Shown here: piece after piece, positions 3,052-50,139 of the stretch
How the letters are laid out: each line of letters opens with the position of its first letter
Numbering within the stretch: the stretch's first letter is position 1
Assembly: GCF_001194135.2 (NCBI RefSeq)
Contig: NC_068982.1
Location: 53,130,940-53,187,538, forward strand
Origin: Octopus bimaculoides
Lineage: Eukaryota
Direction: 5' to 3'
DNA length: 56,599 nt
The notes under the pieces: model-generated
Seen by the model: only the letters and a program-made list of their open reading frames with translations
Told to the model about the DNA's origin: nothing
The model's database searches: none
Translations under genes and position numbers: made by a program

Positions 3052-3738
3052 GTAATTTCAACCAATCACTGACGTCTATTCAGCTGAATACAGTCAGTGC
3101 TCTTTCGTAAGCAATAAATTTCCGCCGGTGTTAAGTGTGTTATTCCCTGTGACATATTTCATCCAGTTTAATCGTCGGGTTCTAGAGTTAGGGTTAGTTT
3201 TAGGGTTACGGTTAGGGTTATGATTATTTTTGCCATAACCTCACTCATAACCCTAACCCTAACCCTAACCCTAACCCTAACCCTAACCCCAACCCTAACC
3301 CTAACTCTAAAACCCGAACCCTAACCCTAAACTAGAGTTTGATTTGAAGAAGATTTGGCTGCTATTTCTAGGAGATGAAGCACTTGGTGGAAGTGCATTA
3401 ATAATTCTGGTAGCTCCAATAACAAGTGCAAGCAATATTCAAGTATTTTGATGGCTTTTTCCCCTTTGTTTACGAACAGTCTAGTTAATCGGAAATGTCA
3501 GAACTAACGGGGATTAATACCATATACACCGTCACAGCACTAACTGTATTCAACTGAATAGACGTCAGTGATTAGTTGAAATTATCGAAATAAGACAATT
3601 TTAACGTGAAATAACTGCGGATACAAACATTTTTATCTGTTCTATACCACAAAATATACAAGTATACGAAGTTTGAAAGTGTTTCGGTACCAAAAACACT
3701 ACATAAAAAAAATGTTGCCCGTCAAACCCTAAAGATCC
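3052..3738. mobile_element. Fold-back element with telomeric tracts, copy 2 (left end truncated)
   Basis: TAATTTCAACCAATCACTGACGTCTATTCAG (about 3054) is inverted at about 3550-3585. TTAGGG-like run at 3188-3220, CCCTAA run at 3248-3330. Arms are homologous to 871-1612. Confidence 0.75.
3248..3330 (-). repeat. Interstitial telomeric repeat (CCCTAA)n
   Basis: About nine near-perfect CCCTAA units followed by degenerate units. Confidence 0.9.
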
Positions 3739-4399
3739 GTGTGTACATATGTATGCCTTATTTTGCCATTTCATTTGCATAAATTTATGTATTATTTATT
3801 TATATATTAATATTTCTGCATATGCGCCTGTACCTTAGCTAAAACGATCTATTCATTTACATTAACACATACGTTATAAACTCTGCCTCCCACCCTTTCT
3901 TTCACTACCTGCCTATCTATAAGCCTCTTTTACTATCTCACACTCAGTGTTTCATTATTTCTCTCCCAATCAGCCTTTCCTTCTTTCTTTCTTCCGTTAT
4001 CGCTCACTCAGCCAGCCTCTCTTTCCCCCATTCCTTTCTCCCCCTCCTCCCTCTCTCTCTCTCTCTCTCTCTCGTGGCAGAAATATTCCTTTTTCAAAAT
4101 GCCGTATTGACATGAAGATTTATGGGAGCATGCCTACCTACATTGACTTAAAATTCTTCAGATTTAGCGCTTAGCGCTTTCCTCGCTCTACTAGCTAACA
4201 TAATACTAAAGATACAACATAAACAGCCTTAGCACTACAATAGAGCCGCACTTTTTTTCTTCTTAACTTAACACGAAATCCACACTCCTCATACAGACTC
4301 CTTGAAAAACCGGCATCTGGTCTTGATCAACGCTAAATTACACCACCCCCTATACTCGCTCACTGTTTCTTTTTTTTTTTTTTTCGCATGCCCGCATAG

Positions 4400-4450
<51 letters not shown>

Positions 4451-4984
4451 CGCGCACACACACACACACACGCAGGAACACAGATACACTGCACACGTAC
4501 ACACTCATATACGAACTTATTCACAGATACGCACGCACGCGTAGATAATCACACGAAGACGTTTATACACATGCGTATAATAGGCACGTCAACAAGCACG
4601 CTCGTGCGGGTTTTTCCCACCAATCTACAGGCGAACGTGAAGTTATCTAAATGTGTGCTGAATGCAACATCGCTGCCTCACCTACTTTCTTTTACTAATT
4701 AAAACAAAGACGGACATGCTAGATAACTTTCACACAGGCGCGCGCGCGCACTTACATCCGCGCGCGCGCGCACACATATGCGTTTATATATTCATACCTA
4801 TTTGTGTGCGTATGTATATACATATGCATATACATACATAGATGCATACATACATGCATACATACAGATAGATACCCACATACAAATGTGTGTGTATGTG
4901 ATTCTGTGTGTTCGTGCGTGTGTGTATGTGAGTCTGTGTGTTTTGCGTGTGTGTGTGTATATTCATACTTTTATTGGGGTGTGC

Positions 4985-5019
<35 letters not shown>

Positions 5020-5538
5020 NNNNNNNNNNNNNNNNNNNNNNNNNNNNNNNNNNNNNNNNNNNNNNNNNNNNNNNNNNNNNNNNNNNNNNNNNNNNNNNNN
5101 NNNNNNNNNNNNNNNNNNNNNNNNNNNNNNNNNNNNNNNNNNNNNNNNNNNNNNNNNNNNNNNNNNNNNNNNNNNNNNNNNNNNNNNNNNNNNNNNNNNN
5201 NNNNNNNNNNNNNNNNNNNNNNNNNNNNNNNNNNNNNNNNNNNNNNNNNNNNNNNNNNNNNNNNNNNNNNNNNNNNNNNNNNNNNNNNNNNNNNNNNNNN
5301 NNNNNNNNNNNNNNNNNNNNNNNNNNNNNNNNNNNNNNNNNNNNNNNNNNNNNNNNNNNNNNNNNNNNNNNNNNNNNNNNNNNNNNNNNNNNNNNNNNNN
5401 NNNNNNNNNNNNNNNNNNNNNNNNNNNNNNNNNNNNNNNNNNNNNNNNNNNNNNNNNNNNNNNNNNNNNNNNNNNNNNNNNNNNNNNNNNNNNNNNNNNN
5501 NNNNNNNNNNNNNNNNNNNNNNNNNNNNNNNNNNNNNN
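5020..5538. other. Assembly gap (example; about 15 N runs in the window)
   Basis: N run flanked by (AT)n. Confidence 0.99.
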
Positions 5539-5596
5539 TATATATATATATATATATATATGTACACACACACATTTATGTGTATATATTCATATG

Positions 5597-5632
<36 letters not shown>

Positions 5633-5633
<1 letters not shown>

Positions 5634-6056
5634 GGCGCAGGCGTGATTGTGTGGTATGAAACTTGCGCCCCAACCACATGGCTCCGGGTTCAGTCCCGCT
5701 GCGTGGCACTTTGGGTAAGTGCCTTCTACTATAGCTTCAGACCGACCAAAGCCTTGTGAATGGATTTGGTAGACGGAAACTGAAAGAAGCCCGTCGCATA
5801 TATGTATATATGCAGTATGTATGTATCTATGTTTGTCAATCTTTGTGCCTGTGTTTGTTCCTCCATCACCGCTTGACAACCGGTGTTGATGTGTTTACAT
5901 CACCGTAACATAGCGGTTCGGCAAAGAGACCAATAGACTAAGTACCAGGTTTAAGATAATAAATCCTGGGATCGATTTGTTCAGCTAAAACCCGCCAAGG
6001 TGGTGCTCCAGCATAGCCGCAGTCAAATGACTGAAACAAGTAAAAGAATAAAAGAA
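5633..6056 (+). mobile_element. SINE family 1, full length
   Basis: Head AGGCGCAGG...GGTTCAGTCCC, body and AAAAGA tail shared with other copies. Confidence 0.85.
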
Positions 6057-6306: not shown

Positions 6307-6590
6307 AGAGAGAGAGAAAGAGAGAGACTGACAGAAAGAGTGAAAGAGAGTAAGAGCGAGAAAGAGAGAGACAGAGAAAGAGAGACAGGCAGAAAGAGAA
6401 AGTGAGAGAAAAAGAAAGAGGGAGACAGAAAGAGAAAGAGAGAAGAAGAGAGAAAGAGAGAGAGGGGGAGAGAAAGAAAGAAAGAGAGAAAGAAAGAAAG
6501 AGAGAAAGATATATATATATATAGAGAGAGAGAGAGAGGGAGAGGGAGAGAGAGAGGGGAGAGAGAGAGGGTGAGACAGACAGAGAGAGG
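6307..6590. repeat. AG-rich polypurine microsatellite
   Basis: Direct reading. Confidence 0.9.
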
Positions 6591-14945: not shown

Positions 14946-15429
14946 CAAAAAAAGAAAACTTATAGTAATGAAAAGAGCAACCACTTTTACGCTTGAAATA
15001 TCTTTAAACAGAAGTACAATATGTATACTTAAAAGCAAGAATAATACACAAGAGAATAAGTAAGAATGTAGTGACATCGTATTCGCCATGAAACATGTTG
15101 ACTGCGGCATAATTAGAGATAGTGATAAAGTGAGCTACTTGGAGTGGGGGCGGAGGGCTCTATTTTTCTATCCTGTAAATTATTATTATCAGTATTTACG
15201 GCAGCAGTGAAGAAGTTATCTAGAGTAGTTTGTCGTTTGCAGAGTATCACCTTTTTACACAGCTCAGTCTAGAAACTGATCTCAGTGTGAACTCCTCTCG
15301 TAATTAGCCATATTCTTTGCAGTCACCTGAAGTGGAGAAGCTGAAACTTCTATCGGACTTTCAGATAAATCTGTTAGTTTCTTTTTCTCCATATATTTTA
15401 ATCCCTATTTTTTCAGCAATGATTTTTAA

Positions 15430-18400
15430 GTGTCGTTACACGACTCAGAGTATGGAAGTTTGACGCAGTTTTGTCGAGACCTAAACTACCAAAACTCAGT
15501 AAAATCGTGCTATAACTGCAGTATTATATATTTTGTGTCGCATATTTATAAATTCTCGAAAATACTCTATTATCTCGAAAATGTCAATTTTTCGAAAAGT
15601 TACAATGTTTTCTTTAAATCTCTAAGGTATCTCACCAGTTTTCCTATATTTAACTTTTAAATAAGATATTTTGCTCTTTATCTTTGCATCAGTTGGATAC
15701 GTGGATATATCATCGTGTGGAAGATGTCTTTGTTGGAACAATCCCCATGCCCTGCATGGTGTAATATTAGGATCTTCTTGAAATATTTCCAGCACTGTTA
15801 ACTTGAATGGCTCATGAATCCCACAGCTAGCACTATACAATGTTGATTGTCCCTTTCTTTTCTTTGTCATCAAGGATGAAATAGCAGTTTTAATTTCTGT
15901 TTCCCATGGTAAATCCAAACGCCCAAGATATTTACATTTAAGTTCCATTAACACTTTACATGGACCTTGTTTCATAGCTTCGTTTTCATTATCCAAATTA
16001 AACATATCAATAATTTCTTGTTTAATCCACATACTTTCGACCATACTTATTACCGTGCTTTCTTGTTCTTGCTCATCCTGTTTCAAATCCATAACACTCA
16101 TTATTATGCTGGATCGCTTCATGAATGGGATCAAACATCTTAAGTTCTTCAACATTTGAACTAGTATTAATCACCTCAAATTGATGCTGTTCATATATAT
16201 CTTTAGCATAAACAATAGCTTGACTGATTAAATCCTGTTGTCCTAAGGCTCCCTTGCAATTATGGATTTCCATTTCGTAGGCAGTTGCAAATTCCCTACG
16301 ACGTAAATTACATTGAAGAGGATTTTCATCGTCTGATTCCATATCCAAATCATTAATATTTGATGCTACAGCAATTCCAATACTATGCTTCTCTGGGATA
16401 TTCCCCATAACACCATAAACAATACATTTTGTTAAGCTGCCTCTACCTTTCTCTACAACACCAATATCTTCAACAGTGTCTGTATCAAAAATTTCATTTT
16501 CAGTGGAAGCACAATCTTCTTCATCGGATTCGCTTTCACAATTTCCTTCATTTACGTCGTTCGTAGTACCATTGATAAGGTTGTATGTTGCTGTCAATGG
16601 TAAGTTTGAATTTTCATAAACTGAAGCGGAATTTCTTATCGAATCAAACTGTACTTCCATATGATCACCTATGTTTTGTAATTTTCCAATTATCTCCAAG
16701 TTTTCCTCTTCAAACTGTTCAACAGTAGGCCTATTAATACCAACCAATTCTACCACTGTATTACTTACACCGCCATAAGTATTTAAAGCATCAACTAATT
16801 CAACAGGTTATAACATCTGAACCCTTATTACAATGCATATACACATGCCTCATAGCTGCAGAAAAAAATGAGCGTCGATACTGCCTTTACCATCTTGTAC
16901 ACCAGTGTGTACAAAAGTACAAAGTTTAAGGTTGTATCTATCTGCAATTTTATATAATGTAAATAACAGTTTCCCTTATAACATCTTGCGCTGTTAGATT
17001 GTACATAAAGATTTCGAATGTATGGAAATTTGGTCGATATTTGTTTACATACTGCATCAAAATAGGATATAACAGCCACATAGTCTTGCTTGCTATCCCC
17101 GGTAGAAATGTGATCGAAGTAAGTGATACGATAATCCTTTGAATTTTCAGTATTACGCCGTTCTTCATCGGTGTATCTTGTATACATCATGATTCATGCC
17201 ACGACGACCCTTTCTTACTGTAAAAATCTGTAGTTTTTTCCCTATAGTAGATAGCTTTGAATTTCATTTTGAAATCCATAACAACCATAGCATCTTCTAA
17301 CTGTAAATTGAACATTATTTCATCAATCCTATTGCGTTGATTAAGTACTCTCACACGATACCAAATAAAAGATATAATTTTTCCATAGCATCATTCAATA
17401 GAATTTCATGTTCTGGGCTTACATGCCATTTAATGTATTGTATTACATAGTTGGGGAAGCAACAAACACCACATTGTTTCATTTCCGCTCATTAAGACAA
17501 CCTATGAGGGACACATTTCTACATGTAGTGTAACAGATAAAGAAAACTGTTTATCTGTGACACTATATGTAGAAATGTGGCCCTCATAGGTTGTCTTAAT
17601 GTAAGCTTTTAAACCATTAACAATAGCATTCAAAGATTCTGGTTCGGCACTGGTAGCAACAACAGTCTTCAAACATGCAAAATTATCATACATTAATACT
17701 ACCGACACATAATCGACCGCTTGTTTGTTTGATCCTTGGTAGTTAACGTTTTCACTATCTTCTGGAATGATGTTGAGCCTAATTGTTTAATTTGAGGTAT
17801 GGTTTCTTTGTAATCACGTAGCATTATAGTTGTATTCTTTTTCCTAATCAGCTTGGGGAGATGTATTTCTTCGCCATTAATCGTAAATGTTTTGGTGCCC
17901 CATGAGATTCAGCATACATTAGCATCCGACAAAACAAACTCCACTGCAGCTTCCATTTGATCTCGATCGTATCGTATAATTGATCTATTGGAAGGTGTAA
18001 GCTGCCTTCCACTTGCCATATGTTTATACTTTCGTCTGAATGAAGCTATTTTCTTCATACCAATACCAAAACGATCTTTCAAAACACTTGAAACTAAGGA
18101 TACCGCTAATGGAGCTGTAACATTATCAGCTTGTACAACATTTCTCGGCAATGCATCTCGTACTTTAATGTTATTTTCCGCTAATTTGCCTTCATCGATG
18201 ACACCGTCTCCTTCGTTTTTAACAACCTCTGTCGTAAGGCCTTCGGCATCGTACGCACTAATGATAGAGCATACTTATTTCATTATGGTACTAGTTAGTT
18301 TCACTAATCGCTTTTTAACTGCTTCGTCAAAGTCTTCCATTCTGGTACTTTCACGTTTAGCTTTCCCGGTAATGATGATACTGATTTTAAACCAAATGCT

Positions 18401-18834
18401 TCATACAATGCCCCCACTGTTGAAACAATTCGTGATGGATCGCTAACTTCTGGTTCAGAATCCTCTTGTTCCGTATACACACTACGTTTTCTTGTATTCA
18501 TATTTGTTTTACGTGTGCCGACAACTCTCATAAGTCGTATTCTCTTTGTGACACGTGTGTTTACATTTTCGTTGCGTTTATTATCTCCACGACATGTACA
18601 TCCACATCTGTAACATCCTTGACAACTAATACATCTACCTTTTTTTGCAAGTACATGATAATTCTGACATAACTGCCGATTGGGTGATGCAAAATCAAAA
18701 TCCAGACTAGCTATGTGGTTTTTTTTATATATTAATTTTAACCAATCAAATTGCCCCGTTTATTTTTCAGTTTGCGACAATTCAATATTTTTAAGTTCTA
18801 CAAAAAGTGAATACTCTGACCCGCGTAGCGACTC
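15430..18834 (-). mobile_element. Sola3-like DNA transposon, full-length but decayed (3405 bp)
   Basis: TTAA on both sides (15426-15429, 18835-18838). 24-bp TIRs GTGTCGTTACACGACTCAGAGTAT vs revcomp GAGTCGCTACGCGGGTCAGAGTAT (19/24). GAG...CTC termini with a TTAA TSD are the described Sola3 signature. Confidence 0.8.
15622..18670 (-). pseudogene. Sola3-type DDD transposase pseudogene (about 1000 codons, many frameshifts/stops)
   Basis: Joined frames: N-terminal Cys cluster CTCKKGRCISCQGCYRCGCTC; SWGTKTFTINGEEIHLPKLIRK; MDFKMKFKAIYYREKTTDFYSKKGSSWH (D1 at 17274-17276); QSNSARCY (D2 position now N, 16993-16995); HTGVQDGKGSIDAHF (D3 at 16874-16876); C-terminal G*ARTRKHGNKYGRKY...IIDMFN...YLGRLDLPWETEIKTAISSL. 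Confidence 0.8.
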
Positions 18835-18842
18835 TTAAAAAT

Positions 18843-19742
18843 CAATCAATAATATATTCTCCTTTTCCGCTTTATTGTTCACAACATCTTACCAACGTCA
18901 CACTAGCTTGTCAATGCTTTGACATTAGAAACCGCAGAGTCTTAACTAGAAGAATCCGAGCCATGTTTTCAATTCCATGTCGTTGTTGATCGAAACACTT
19001 TGCAGACTATTTGAGAGCAACCGAAAAAGGAGATGATCTGAAGGCGCTGTATCAGGAGAATACCATGGATGCAGCTGAACTTTCCAATCGAGCTCTTGAA
19101 TAGCCTTTCTGGTAAAATTAGCGGTGTGAGAGCTGTTGTCATTTTGAAGAAATACGCTGCATCGTCGTTCGGGTAGTTTCAGTTGGATTGGCTCATTGAA
19201 CTTGTTCATTTGCAGAACATAAATCTCTGCATTGGCCCAGTGGTTGTTATCAAGCATTCTGTAGTGCATTAGCCCTTCCCAGTACCACCAAACGAAGATC
19301 ATTGTCTTGCAGTGAGCGGGGGGAGATCTTGCTTGGTTCGAAGTATTGCTTGCTTGTCGGAGTTTAGACATTCTTTACTCCTTCTTCATAATTACGCAAG
19401 ACACAGTTTTCATCTGGTAATGATGTTGTAAAGAAATCTCTATTTGAGACCATGTGTAGCCTAGTGTCGAACGAGCGAACTAGAGTAATAGAGAAGCGCT
19501 GGAATTTGTTTCATTCGCCCAGGGCGTGTGGCACCCGTGCACCAAACTTTTGAACGTGCATAGTCTGTGAAGTCGAATTCCCCCACCTTGAATCGTGACA
19601 AATAATTTCTGTGCTGTTCTTTCAGTAATAGCGCCGTCTTTATTGTTCTATTATCTGGAGTGGCTTTGGCAGCTTTGAAACCTTGATTGAAAGCGAAAAG
19701 CAAGTGTCGAACATGCTCATGCTCATCATTTCTACTTCTCAC
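18843..19742 (-). pseudogene. Mariner transposase pseudogene
   Basis: EHVRHLLFAFNQG, RFKVGEFDFTD, MIFVWW, FLQNDNSSH, HPWYSPDTAPSDHLLFRLLSNSL, ending KGEYIID*; frameshifts and an internal deletion. Confidence 0.9.
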
Positions 19743-23432: not shown

Positions 23433-23475
<43 letters not shown>

Positions 23476-23526
23476 ATATCATCCCCATCCCCACCATTAT
23501 CACCATCATCACGGTAATCATCGTCG

Positions 23527-23557
<31 letters not shown>

Positions 23558-23635
23558 AATCATCATCATCATCATCATCATCAATATCATCCCCATCCCC
23601 ACCATTATCACCATCATCAAGGTAATCATCGTCGT

Positions 23636-23684
<49 letters not shown>

Positions 23685-28838: not shown

Positions 28839-29304
28839 TATAATGTAAAACATTAAAAAATTCTTCTGTACTTGGATTGAAAGTTATTTATATTCTTCTA
28901 CATTTTACTTATTTCAAGCATTGGACTGTGGCTACGGTGGAGCGCTACCATTAGAGAGTTAGTTGAACGAATCGTCCCCATTACTTAATCACTCGGTTAT
29001 TTTTGCAAGGCCACTATGTAACGAGGATGTAAATAAGCCAACACCTGCTGTCAATCAGCAGGTGTGTGGGGGAGGGGTTGACAAGCACAAAGACGCACGC
29101 ACACACACAAGCACTCATACGCACGCATATCTGTATAAACACGAAAGGCTTCCCCGCAGCTTTCGTCAAACAAATTCACTCACAATGTATTGCTCGGCCC
29201 AAGACACCGTATAGTAGGACTGAACCTGTAAGTATGGGGTTACGAAGTGAGCATCATAACCACGTAGCCATGCCCGCATACTCTTACTTTTATTTTAGTG
29301 TACA

Positions 29305-29316
29305 TGCATACATACA

Positions 29317-29350
<34 letters not shown>

Positions 29351-29355
29351 CATAT

Positions 29356-29386
<31 letters not shown>

Positions 29387-29396
29387 CATACATACA

Positions 29397-29430
<34 letters not shown>

Positions 29431-29770
29431 CATACATACATACATATATACATACATACATGCACATACATAAAGCATATACGCATACATAATTACATAC
29501 TTATACGCACATACATAAATACACTCGTACACATACATACATAATTACATATATACACACACACATACATATATGTATACAAACATTTAATATACTTTAT
29601 AGTATAAATACATGCATACATTCGTACACATACATACATGCATATATACATACACGCATACATATGTACGTACATATATAAACAGACATGCATACATAAT
29701 TACATACATACACATATATACATTCGTACACATATATACATTCGTACACATATATACATACATAATTACA
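29305..29770. repeat. (ATAC)n microsatellite field
   Basis: Direct reading. Confidence 0.9.
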
Positions 29771-47701: not shown

Positions 47702-48961
47702 ACTAGCAGAAATACCCGGCTTTGCCCGGGTTAAAGAGAATAATGAAATCTAAAAACGCCGTCTAGACTACGCAACCCTCAACTGTTAGTAGCTACGATA
47801 CCATATTTCTACATTAATAACTCTCCAATCCATGCCAGCATGGAACATAGACATTAAGTGGAATGCCAGTCTCTCATCTAGGAGGGCCTTGAAATCAATG
47901 TTACCAACTGGGTACTATGTGTGTCGTAGTGATAATAAAAAGACCCAAAGGAGGTCTGCAACGAAATAATTTTACTCAACACTTTGCAAGTGAATCAGTG
48001 GAGGCAAAGATGCGTCTCATTTACTTGACAATTTATGCACCACATTGCAGAAATCACNNNNNNNNNNNNNNNNNNNNNNNNNNNNNNNNNNNNNNNNNNN
48101 NNNNNNNNNNNNNNNNNNNNNNNNNNNNNNNNNNNNNNNNNNNNNNNNNNNNNNNNNNNNNNNNNNNNNNNNNNNNNNNNNNNNNNNNNNNNNNNNNNNN
48201 NNNNNNNNNNNNNNNNNNNNNNNNNNNNNNNNNNNNNNNNNNNNNNNNNNNNNNNNNNNNNNNNNNNNNNNNNNNNNNNNNNNNNNNNNNNNNNNNNNNN
48301 NNNNNNNNNNNNNNNNNNNNNNNNNNNNNNNNNNNNNNNNNNNNNNNNNNNNNNNNNNNNNNNNNNNNNNNNNNNNNNNNNNNNNNNNNNNNNNNNNNNN
48401 NNNNNNNNNNNNNNNNNNNNNNNNNNNNNNNNNNNNNNNNNNNNNNNNNNNNNNNNNNNNNNNNNNNNNNNNNNNNNNNNNNNNNNNNNNNNNNNNNNNN
48501 NNNNNNNNNNNNNNNNNNNNNNNNNNNNNNNNNNNNNNNNNNNNNNNNNNNNNNNNNNNNNNNNNNNNNNNNNNNNNNNNNNNNNNNNNNNNNNNNNNNN
48601 NNNNNNNNNNNNNNNNNNNNNNNNNNNNNNNNNNNNNNNNNNNNNNNNNNNNNNNNNNNNNNNNNNNNNNNNNNNNNNNNNNNNNNNNNNNNNNNNNNNN
48701 NNNNNNNNNNNNNNNNNNNNNNNNNNNNNNNNTTAGTAGAATAGTTTCATTTTTAAAGTGAAAGTATTTGACATGAGTGTTTTTGTTTCACTTTTGACAC
48801 GTAATACTTAAATAGTGTAGGAGATATTATGTTGCTGTGGGCTCGAACTCTGGAAGAAGTTAAAATTTTTTTTTTACTAAAACACAACTGGAACCCTAAG
48901 TAAGGCATCTGTAAAATTTGAATGAAATTGGTTGCGTAGTTCTCGAGTTTTAGGGATTCAC

Positions 48962-48992
<31 letters not shown>

Positions 48993-49023
48993 CACACACA
49001 TTCTCATTTTTATATATATAGAT
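47702..49023 (+). mobile_element. Helentron-associated element (HINE/DINE-1-like) spanning a gap
   Basis: 5' ACTAGCAGAAATACCCGGCTTTGCCCGGG; 3' AAATTTGAATGAAATTGG...(ACAG)n...TTTTATATATATAGAT. That the two ends belong to one element across the gap is assumed. Confidence 0.7.
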
Positions 49024-50139
49024 AACCGTTAGCAGATAAGGATGTGTAAACGTTCTCGCGCAAGTTTGGTGCGCATGTACACTCGTTCATACAAGCATAC
49101 ACGAAGGTGTAAGCAAACGCACACGTGTGGTTTGGTGCACACACGTTCACATAACGAATTAAAAAGTTACACACGTGCATGTGTATATATATATATATAC
49201 ATTATCCAAGAGCACGTATGTCTGAAAAGATTAATTGAATGCGCTCACACACAATAATAAAAAAAAACTTCTTCCAGAAAGGTTAGTGACATTGGGTTAA
49301 AAGATTTTATAACTGATTTAAAAAAATATTCCCTTTATACTTAAAAAACTGTATTGACTAATTTTCACAAAGACTTTCAAATAAATACATGCATATANNN
49401 NNNNNNNNNNNNNNNNNNNNNNNNNNNNNNNNNNNNNNNNNNNNNNNNNNNNNNNNNNNNNNNNNNNNNNNNNNNNNNNNNNNNNNNNNNNNNNNNNNNN
49501 NNNNNNNNNNNNNNNNNNNNNNNNNNNNNNNNNNNNNNNNNNNNNNNNNNNNNNNNNNNNNNNNNNNNNNNNNNNNNNNNNNNTATATATATATATATAT
49601 GAACAGGATAATGGCTACTACGTAATTTGTGAAATTCGAAAATGTAATTATTCTGAATTTAATTACCGAATGAAGTTGCATATTTTAGCAAATTAGTATG
49701 GCTAATTCTGTGTGTAAACATCAACTATAAATAATTCCACGCTTCGGCGATAACGCTAAATTTCGAGCTGATTCAGAATCTAAATCACTTGACTGGAAGC
49801 TCCGTTAAGTCTCATTTAATAATTATGCTTCTTTATTTCCTTATTGGAAGATACCTCGCGTGAGCTTCCGTTTTCATGGTAAACGCTCTCAGTCTCAATG
49901 AGAGCGCCAAATAAAGTCGCTTATATACCGTATTTCCTGAACTTTCCATTCTCTATAGCCTGCAATTTAAAATAGAATACACATAGAATTAAATAACCAG
50001 ATAAAATAAAGCAAGACCTTTTTCAAATAACAATTGCTCTATTCACTTCTTATGTAAACTGCATAACGGTTGTATAACGATTCTTTGAACCTTTTTTTTT
50101 ATCGTTTTCTTGTCTTTTTAGGAATATGAAATTACTAGG

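Follow-up and report, generated by a model that had tools for sequence, protein, structure and literature searches.

A decayed Sola3-type DNA transposon with short terminal inverted repeats in the genome of Octopus bimaculoides

This study concerns a 3405-bp element at positions 15430-18834 of a 56,599-nucleotide stretch of Octopus bimaculoides DNA (assembly GCF_001194135.2, contig NC_068982.1, positions 53,130,940 to 53,187,538 of the forward strand), which is referred to in full as the window. The element is very probably one copy, dead but with its structure complete, of an autonomous Sola3-type cut-and-paste DNA transposon encoding a transposase with a catalytic triad of aspartates (DDD). 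Within the octopus genome it adds to the dead transposons, lies inside another transposon and shows no sign of function; at the same time it places a Sola3 lineage in the cephalopods.

Boundaries, reading frame and decay of the window copy

The tetranucleotide TTAA lies directly outside each end of the element, where an earlier note on this DNA had claimed a target-site duplication (TSD), and when the element is removed and the flanks are joined the palindromic empty site TGATTTTTAAAAATCA is obtained. The left end, GTGTCGTTACACGACTCAGAGTAT, and the reverse complement of the right end, GAGTCGCTACGCGGGTCAGAGTAT, which were paired by the repeat finder, are identical at 19 of 24 positions and form imperfect terminal inverted repeats (TIRs). 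A degenerate TIR pattern found just these two sites in 56.6 kb, with none expected from 100 dinucleotide-preserving shuffles, and the window holds only one copy of the element. The TIRs had been described as 24 bp long and ending in CTC, which is correct for the length of the pair and for the right end, finishing GACTC/TTAA, but not for the left end, which begins GTG and is mismatched at base 2.

The left boundary was independently confirmed by a paralogue from Octopus vulgaris (L006; OX597814.1), the closest DNA relative of the window copy, with 92.8% identity at aligned bases and 187 mismatches (64% transitions). This paralogue lies at a different locus and aligns to window positions 18114-15424, with the similarity ending exactly past the TIR tip and TTA(G). 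Its end reads GAATCGTTACACGACTCAGAGTAT and matches the left TIR end of the window copy. Since four of the five positions at which the two window TIRs differ are common to the matching end of the paralogue, the TIRs appear to have been imperfect, at least in part, already in the source element.

The remnant of the transposase frame runs along the minus strand for about 1016 codons, in line with the broken open reading frame (ORF) of roughly 1000 codons reported previously. The frameshift-aware reconstruction that had been suggested, carried out against the intact 993-residue relative P0005, recovered a single collinear frame without sign of introns. Once 11 frameshifts (near 18646, 18369, 17728, 17522, 17484, 17359, 17189, 16968, 16867, 16805 and 16024) and three in-frame stops (at 18277, 17911 and 16075) are allowed for, the frame is collinear from end to end with intact relatives of 993-1026 residues; its longest unbroken piece comprises 227 residues. 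The frame is also broken by an inverted duplication with 52-nt arms, in which the arm at 17490-17541, translated on the plus strand, encodes the peptide that the coding arm encodes on the minus strand. The extra 37 and 19 nt of this duplication are missing from the O. vulgaris paralogue. A miniature inverted-repeat transposable element inserted at this hairpin was considered and rejected, as the arms repeat a piece of the element's coding sequence in inverted orientation. Most of the frameshifting indels, like the inverted duplication, are private to the window copy when it is compared with the paralogue, so that the copy was probably intact when it was inserted and then decayed in place.

The position of the element points to a nested insertion. 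A decayed mariner-like transposase remnant occupies window positions 18946-19371 on the minus strand (Pfam Transposase_1, E = 1.5e-9), and when the flanks are joined its frame runs on to the insertion point, toward 15429, which indicates that an older mariner hosts the Sola3 element in its 3' tail.

Sola3 assignment, catalytic core and alternative identities

Focusing on the catalytic core, a family profile was built from three intact relatives and scored against published cores given in the supplementary data to Majorek et al. 2014 (PMC3985635), in which Sola3 forms clade E.13 of the RNase H-like superfamily. The cores comprised Sola3-1_HM, C. remanei CRE_08425, Sola2-1_HM and Sola1-1_AP, and were accompanied by 1000 shuffled decoys. 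Against the C. remanei CRE_08425 Sola3 core the profile reached 38.5 bits (E = 2e-11), and against the Hydra Sola3-1_HM core 19.9 bits (E = 8e-6), with the best of the decoys at 2.8 bits; the Sola1-1_AP and Sola2-1_HM cores scored no higher than the decoys. In the alignments to the Sola3 cores, the D of MDFK, the SDNA..Y block and the GK block are all in register. These profile matches bear out the earlier description of the element as Sola3-like and, as far as sequence comparison goes, identify it as a Sola3-type transposase that is distant from the two reference sequences.

The catalytic triad of the family corresponds to D342, D437 and D478 in the numbering of the relative P0001, and these residues are 93-98% conserved among about 130 relatives. 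The window copy reads D, N, D, and the O. vulgaris paralogue retains SDNARCY; the statement that the window copy has three acidic catalytic positions is therefore incorrect, as only two are acidic and the second is Asn. The motif set noted previously is present as VMDFKMKF, YYREK and GKGSIDAHF, but the copy has KKGSSWH instead of KRG.SWH and QSNSARCY instead of QSDNARCY. A fourth aspartate, D397, is near-invariant in the clade and is missing from the Hydra and Caenorhabditis cores.

An AlphaFold2 model of P0001, calculated from a 20-sequence alignment, has a mean predicted local distance difference test score (pLDDT) of 75.9, with values of 85-95 across residues 330-560. The modelled core follows the order beta1-beta2-beta3-alpha-beta4-alpha-beta5-alpha, which is typical of RNase H-like transposases, with D342 on beta-1, D437 just past beta-4 and D478 where the helix that follows beta-5 begins. 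The model thus predicts a DDD triad on an RNase H-like fold for the transposase of the clade, the window copy itself carrying D, N, D. In a Foldseek search of the PDB, the top weak matches were all RNase H-like nucleases, namely Mos1 transposase, Argonaute PIWI domains and a herpesvirus terminase nuclease.

Several parts outside the core are common to the relatives: a cluster of cysteines at the N terminus, a helical pre-catalytic module in which a C..C pair is conserved, an acidic linker that is disordered, a C2HC-like finger and a tail of helices. The cysteine cluster has the spacing C-x-C-x4-C-x2-C-x2-C-x2-C-x-C-x-C at the N termini of P0005 and P0009 also; it has no Pfam match, and a role in zinc binding and DNA recognition is putative. 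The UniRef label of an O. vulgaris fragment that spans the zinc-finger stretch (P0191) is 'C2H2-type domain-containing protein'. The positions of these features are collected in Table 1.

Table 1. Positions of the element's features in the window, with the strand and the basis of each call
Feature	Position	Strand	Basis
Left TTAA target-site duplication	15426-15429		Read directly
Left TIR, 3' element end in coding orientation (GTGTCGTTACACGACTCAGAGTAT)	15430-15453	+	Repeat finder; TIR pattern scan; end of L006
Transposase frame remnant, about 1016 codons, ATG 18670-18668, stop 15624-15622	15622-18670	-	Frameshift-aware alignment to P0005; tblastn; multiple alignment
Remnant C2HC/C2H2-like zinc finger (PLQCNLRRREFATAYEMEIHNCKG), second Cys lost	16250-16321	-	Relatives read LQC..C..KF.......H.C.G
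Third catalytic Asp, D in GKGSIDAHF	16874-16876	-	D in 124/133 relatives, E in 5; first turn of the helix after beta-5 in the model
Second catalytic position, Asn here (QSNSARCY, not QSDNARCY)	16993-16995	-	D in 132/138 relatives and both published Sola3 cores
First catalytic Asp, D in VMDFKMKF	17274-17276	-	D in 126/128 relatives and both published Sola3 cores; strand beta-1 in the model
Private inverted duplication of coding sequence, 52-nt arms (17490-17541 and 17550-17601), 94% complementary, breaking the frame	17490-17601		Repeat finder; translation; paralogue
N-terminal cysteine cluster (CTCKKGRCISCQGCYRCGCTC), putative zinc-binding DNA-recognition motif	18592-18655	-	Spacing shared with P0005 and P0009
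Right TIR, 5' element end (GAGTCGCTACGCGGGTCAGAGTAT on the coding strand)	18811-18834	-	Repeat finder; TIR pattern scan
Right TTAA target-site duplication	18835-18838		Read directly

Several points weigh against the assignment to an autonomous Sola3-type element. No Pfam family was matched at E <= 1 by the window protein, P0005 or P0009, save for sub-threshold chance matches, and the model of P0001 has no significant structural neighbour in the PDB, the best Foldseek match having E = 0.026. Membership of Sola3 is judged from two published core sequences and not from a curated Repbase or Dfam set. The 4-bp TSD, with TTAA on both sides of the window element and of five relatives, would agree with the target of Sola3, which is reportedly TTAA. 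Neither TSDs nor TIRs are described in the papers mentioning Sola3 that were covered, a set without Bao et al. 2009 and Yuan & Wessler 2011.

A TTAA duplication combined with short TIRs is also found in piggyBac and Kolobok, and on these features alone the element could belong to either of these TTAA-targeting superfamilies in place of Sola3. The matches of the family profile are specific to the published Sola3 cores, the window termini are GAG/GTG... and not CCC...GGG, and neither the piggyBac transposase domain (DDE_Tnp_1_7) nor THAP was among the Pfam families matched at E <= 1 by the window protein, P0005 or P0009. We therefore rejected both identities as highly improbable, for Kolobok on a domain comparison confined to THAP, and the grouping with another superfamily that had been named as a possible refutation was not seen in these comparisons. 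It may also be asked whether a host gene, functional or domesticated, or a transposase that still works is encoded at this locus, as several 'hypothetical protein' models in the O. vulgaris annotation derive from such fragments and a beta-hexosaminidase model includes one. With 11 frameshifts, three stops, an internal inverted duplication and the loss of the second catalytic Asp, with no intact piece longer than 227 residues, and with disabling indels that are private to this copy, such a role can hardly be credited and was rejected. A dead copy of a Sola3-type transposon is the reading that we retain.

The short-repeat branch and the origin of the octopus family

The relatives of the element were sought exhaustively with a profile among 1.84 billion representative proteins, of which 3860 matched at E <= 1e-3 and 309 reached E <= 1e-30. 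This search exposed a large clade with neither a Pfam model nor a solved structure. Its consensus, drawn from a 50-sequence alignment, is D.KMKFE..RE.T..GK[RK]G.SWHG / QSDNA.CY / QDGK...DAHFA, which corresponds to the motif set listed in the earlier note. None of the 150 best-scoring database representatives falls below 165 bits, compared with 20-38 bits for the two Sola3 references. TTAA flanks and short TIRs of 27-31 bp were found at five independent relatives, from metagenomes and one NCBI assembly, with TIR matches of 31/31 (L001), 31/31 (L005), 29 perfect and 31/34 overall (L008), 30/32 (L010) and 27/30 (L012); none of 200 shuffled loci had a comparable TIR pair. Short ends are hence a property of the branch and not an oddity of the octopus copy. 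L001, L005 and L008 are about 3.4-3.6 kb long; L001 and L008 each contain one intact intronless ORF of 984-1026 residues, and the gene of L005 was called as two ORFs of 614 and 353 residues. Together, the scores and the short ends support a distinct short-TIR sub-lineage of Sola3, apart from the Hydra and Caenorhabditis references, and the suggestion of a distinct lineage made in the earlier note is sustained to that extent by the sequence comparisons. The intact relatives with perfect TIRs and TTAA flanks are candidates for new transposon tools.

A metagenome scan with octopus-specific peptide patterns gave no match, and a second scan seeded with alignment A2 gave five loci, one of them with TIRs. 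Two metagenomic loci, L010 and L011, have the same terminus as the octopus element, TTAA/GAG.CG, and their 5' untranslated regions can be aligned with its own in several blocks. In L010 (980-1447 and nearby; IMG 3300001843) and L011 (ENA ERZ2944672), in-frame stops, seen in the alignment and not as codons, occupy positions at which relatives have Arg; these copies are also decaying, and the host is AT-rich (33-34% GC). Another locus, L004, is an MMETSP-derived transcript (IMG 3300017265) with inverted CACGAGTGAAGGTACCCAAAATT copies near both contig ends, from which the element appears to be transcribed across its terminal repeats in that protist culture. At L007 (GCA_014466275.1, JACKZZ010012789.1), a 536-residue ORF at 4198-5808 adjoins a full Sola3-type gene. 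The N-terminal part of this ORF matches Pfam NDC10_II (E = 9e-15), and its C-terminal 230 residues are 38% identical (E = 2e-44) to the Sola3 pre-catalytic module and end just short of the catalytic core; it may reflect domain shuffling between mobile elements.

In Octopus itself, a search with an octopus-specific alignment found eight fragments of O. vulgaris proteins, spread over five or more chromosome-scale records, with 60-94% amino-acid identity to the window copy; the family is therefore multi-copy, old and diversified in this genus. Among the O. vulgaris gene models now flagged as holding fragments of the element is one of beta-hexosaminidase. In the beta-hexosaminidase models P0002 (UniParc UPI00078A67FB) and P0202 (O. 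vulgaris beta-hexosaminidase subunit beta-like), a transposon-protein stretch that is 74-84% identical is fused to glycosyl-hydrolase 20 domains, representing either an annotation chimera or an exonised insertion.

The possible horizontal origin raised in the earlier note, in which the family would have entered the cephalopods or the octopods from a donor outside the molluscs, such as a marine protist, is in our view less likely than not. The phylogeny of the DDD domain that had been suggested was calculated by neighbour joining from 251 core columns, and groups the octopus copy with P0005 (an MMETSP protist-culture transcript), P0178 (a marine metagenome fragment) and P0171 (a protein of assembly GCA_047291915.1) with a bootstrap value of 96.5%. 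Taxon names were obtained for only a few relatives; the named non-octopus relatives are all protists, comprising the diatoms Ditylum brightwellii (52-53% identity over about 200 residues) and Seminavis robusta, the red alga Rhodosorus marinus and two MMETSP culture transcripts, and no other animal is among the named matches. The proposed association of the motif set with oomycetes and protists thus holds for protists, but no oomycete was seen among these names. The terminus and the alignable 5' untranslated region that L010 and L011, from two unrelated metagenomes, have in common with the octopus family also speak for transfer, as does a survey of 36 molluscs including two cephalopods, in which ORF-bearing Sola elements were found in bivalves only (PMC10294476); the latter agrees as well with an octopus genome that holds only decayed copies. 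However, the identity to every non-octopus relative is low, being 54-60% in the N-terminal half for L010 and L011, the closest of them, and 45% over the full length for P0005, and no similarity beyond what host divergence allows is seen. In the octopus the family is old and diversified, as two copies differ by 7% in DNA and fragments are 60-94% identical in amino acids, and the genomic comparison within cephalopods and molluscs comprises one O. vulgaris locus. Culture transcriptomes can carry contaminants, and a host is known for only a minority of the relatives. Moreover, the collections that were searched are dominated by microbes and metagenomes, and in animals transposons are usually masked ahead of gene prediction, so that the missing animal matches carry little weight. 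The tree and the named relatives fit a protist-like lineage, yet they are not evidence of transfer. A broader proposal, namely transfer between diatom-like marine protist hosts and a cephalopod ancestor together with a DFKMKF branch that would be an essentially undescribed major Sola3 sub-superfamily, some members of which may be active and usable as piggyBac-like tools, is speculative and, taken as a whole, unlikely.

Surrounding sequence, proposed life of the element and comparison with known transposons

The remainder of the window contains several simple-sequence features. An interstitial telomere-like array, (TAACCC) x 13.5 with 87% matches, is located at 3248-3330, and microsatellites are found at 29301-29764 ((TACA) x 118), 23435-23655 ((CAT) x 74) and 6307-6589 ((AGAG) x 71). 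The stretch at 48001-50000 is a very AT-rich 2 kb with a GC content of 0.19. Many of the long six-frame ORFs of the window overlie simple repeats.

The following life of the element may be proposed. The ancestral element would have been about 3.4 kb long, with TIRs of about 25-30 bp, and its only gene, without introns, would have encoded a transposase of about 1000 residues. From the N to the C terminus, this protein would have consisted of the cysteine cluster, the helical pre-catalytic module, the RNase H-like core, the acidic linker, the C2HC-like finger and the helical tail, a layout taken in part from the window copy and in part from the P0001 model, and its core would have carried three aspartates in the motifs MDFKMKF, QSDNARCY and GKG.IDAHF. 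By analogy with the superfamily, the transposase would have bound the TIRs, cut the element out and placed it in a TTAA site, with duplication of the four bases. The window copy presumably landed in the tail of the older mariner-like element, after which neutral decay would have introduced the 11 frameshifts, the three stops, the change of the second Asp to Asn and the inverted internal duplication, and would have left the TIRs at 19/24. The family is an old, multi-copy one in Octopus and falls within a large short-repeat Sola3 branch that is represented mostly in marine protist and metagenome data.

Compared with other TTAA-targeting transposons, the octopus family resembles piggyBac in its TTAA TSD, short TIRs, RNase H-like core and cysteine-rich putative DNA-binding motif. 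However, the cysteine cluster is N-terminal in the octopus family and C-terminal in piggyBac, the termini differ, and the octopus-family protein, of about 1000 residues, has an additional C2HC-like finger and no piggyBac Pfam domain. With Kolobok it has the TTAA duplication and short TIRs in common; a comparison confined to the THAP part of Kolobok detected no THAP domain, and the profile matches Sola3 cores instead. With the Sola3 group it shares the alignable core motifs (D on beta-1, ..RE....[FY][FY]GK.G.S.H, SDNA..Y, and GK followed by D), a 4-bp duplication and a single large transposase gene, and probably DDD chemistry. It differs from the Hydra and C. remanei references in the clade signatures K344, W367, the near-invariant D397 (Y[FY]DH) and H480-F481, and the TIRs of the octopus-type clade are short, at 24-31 bp.

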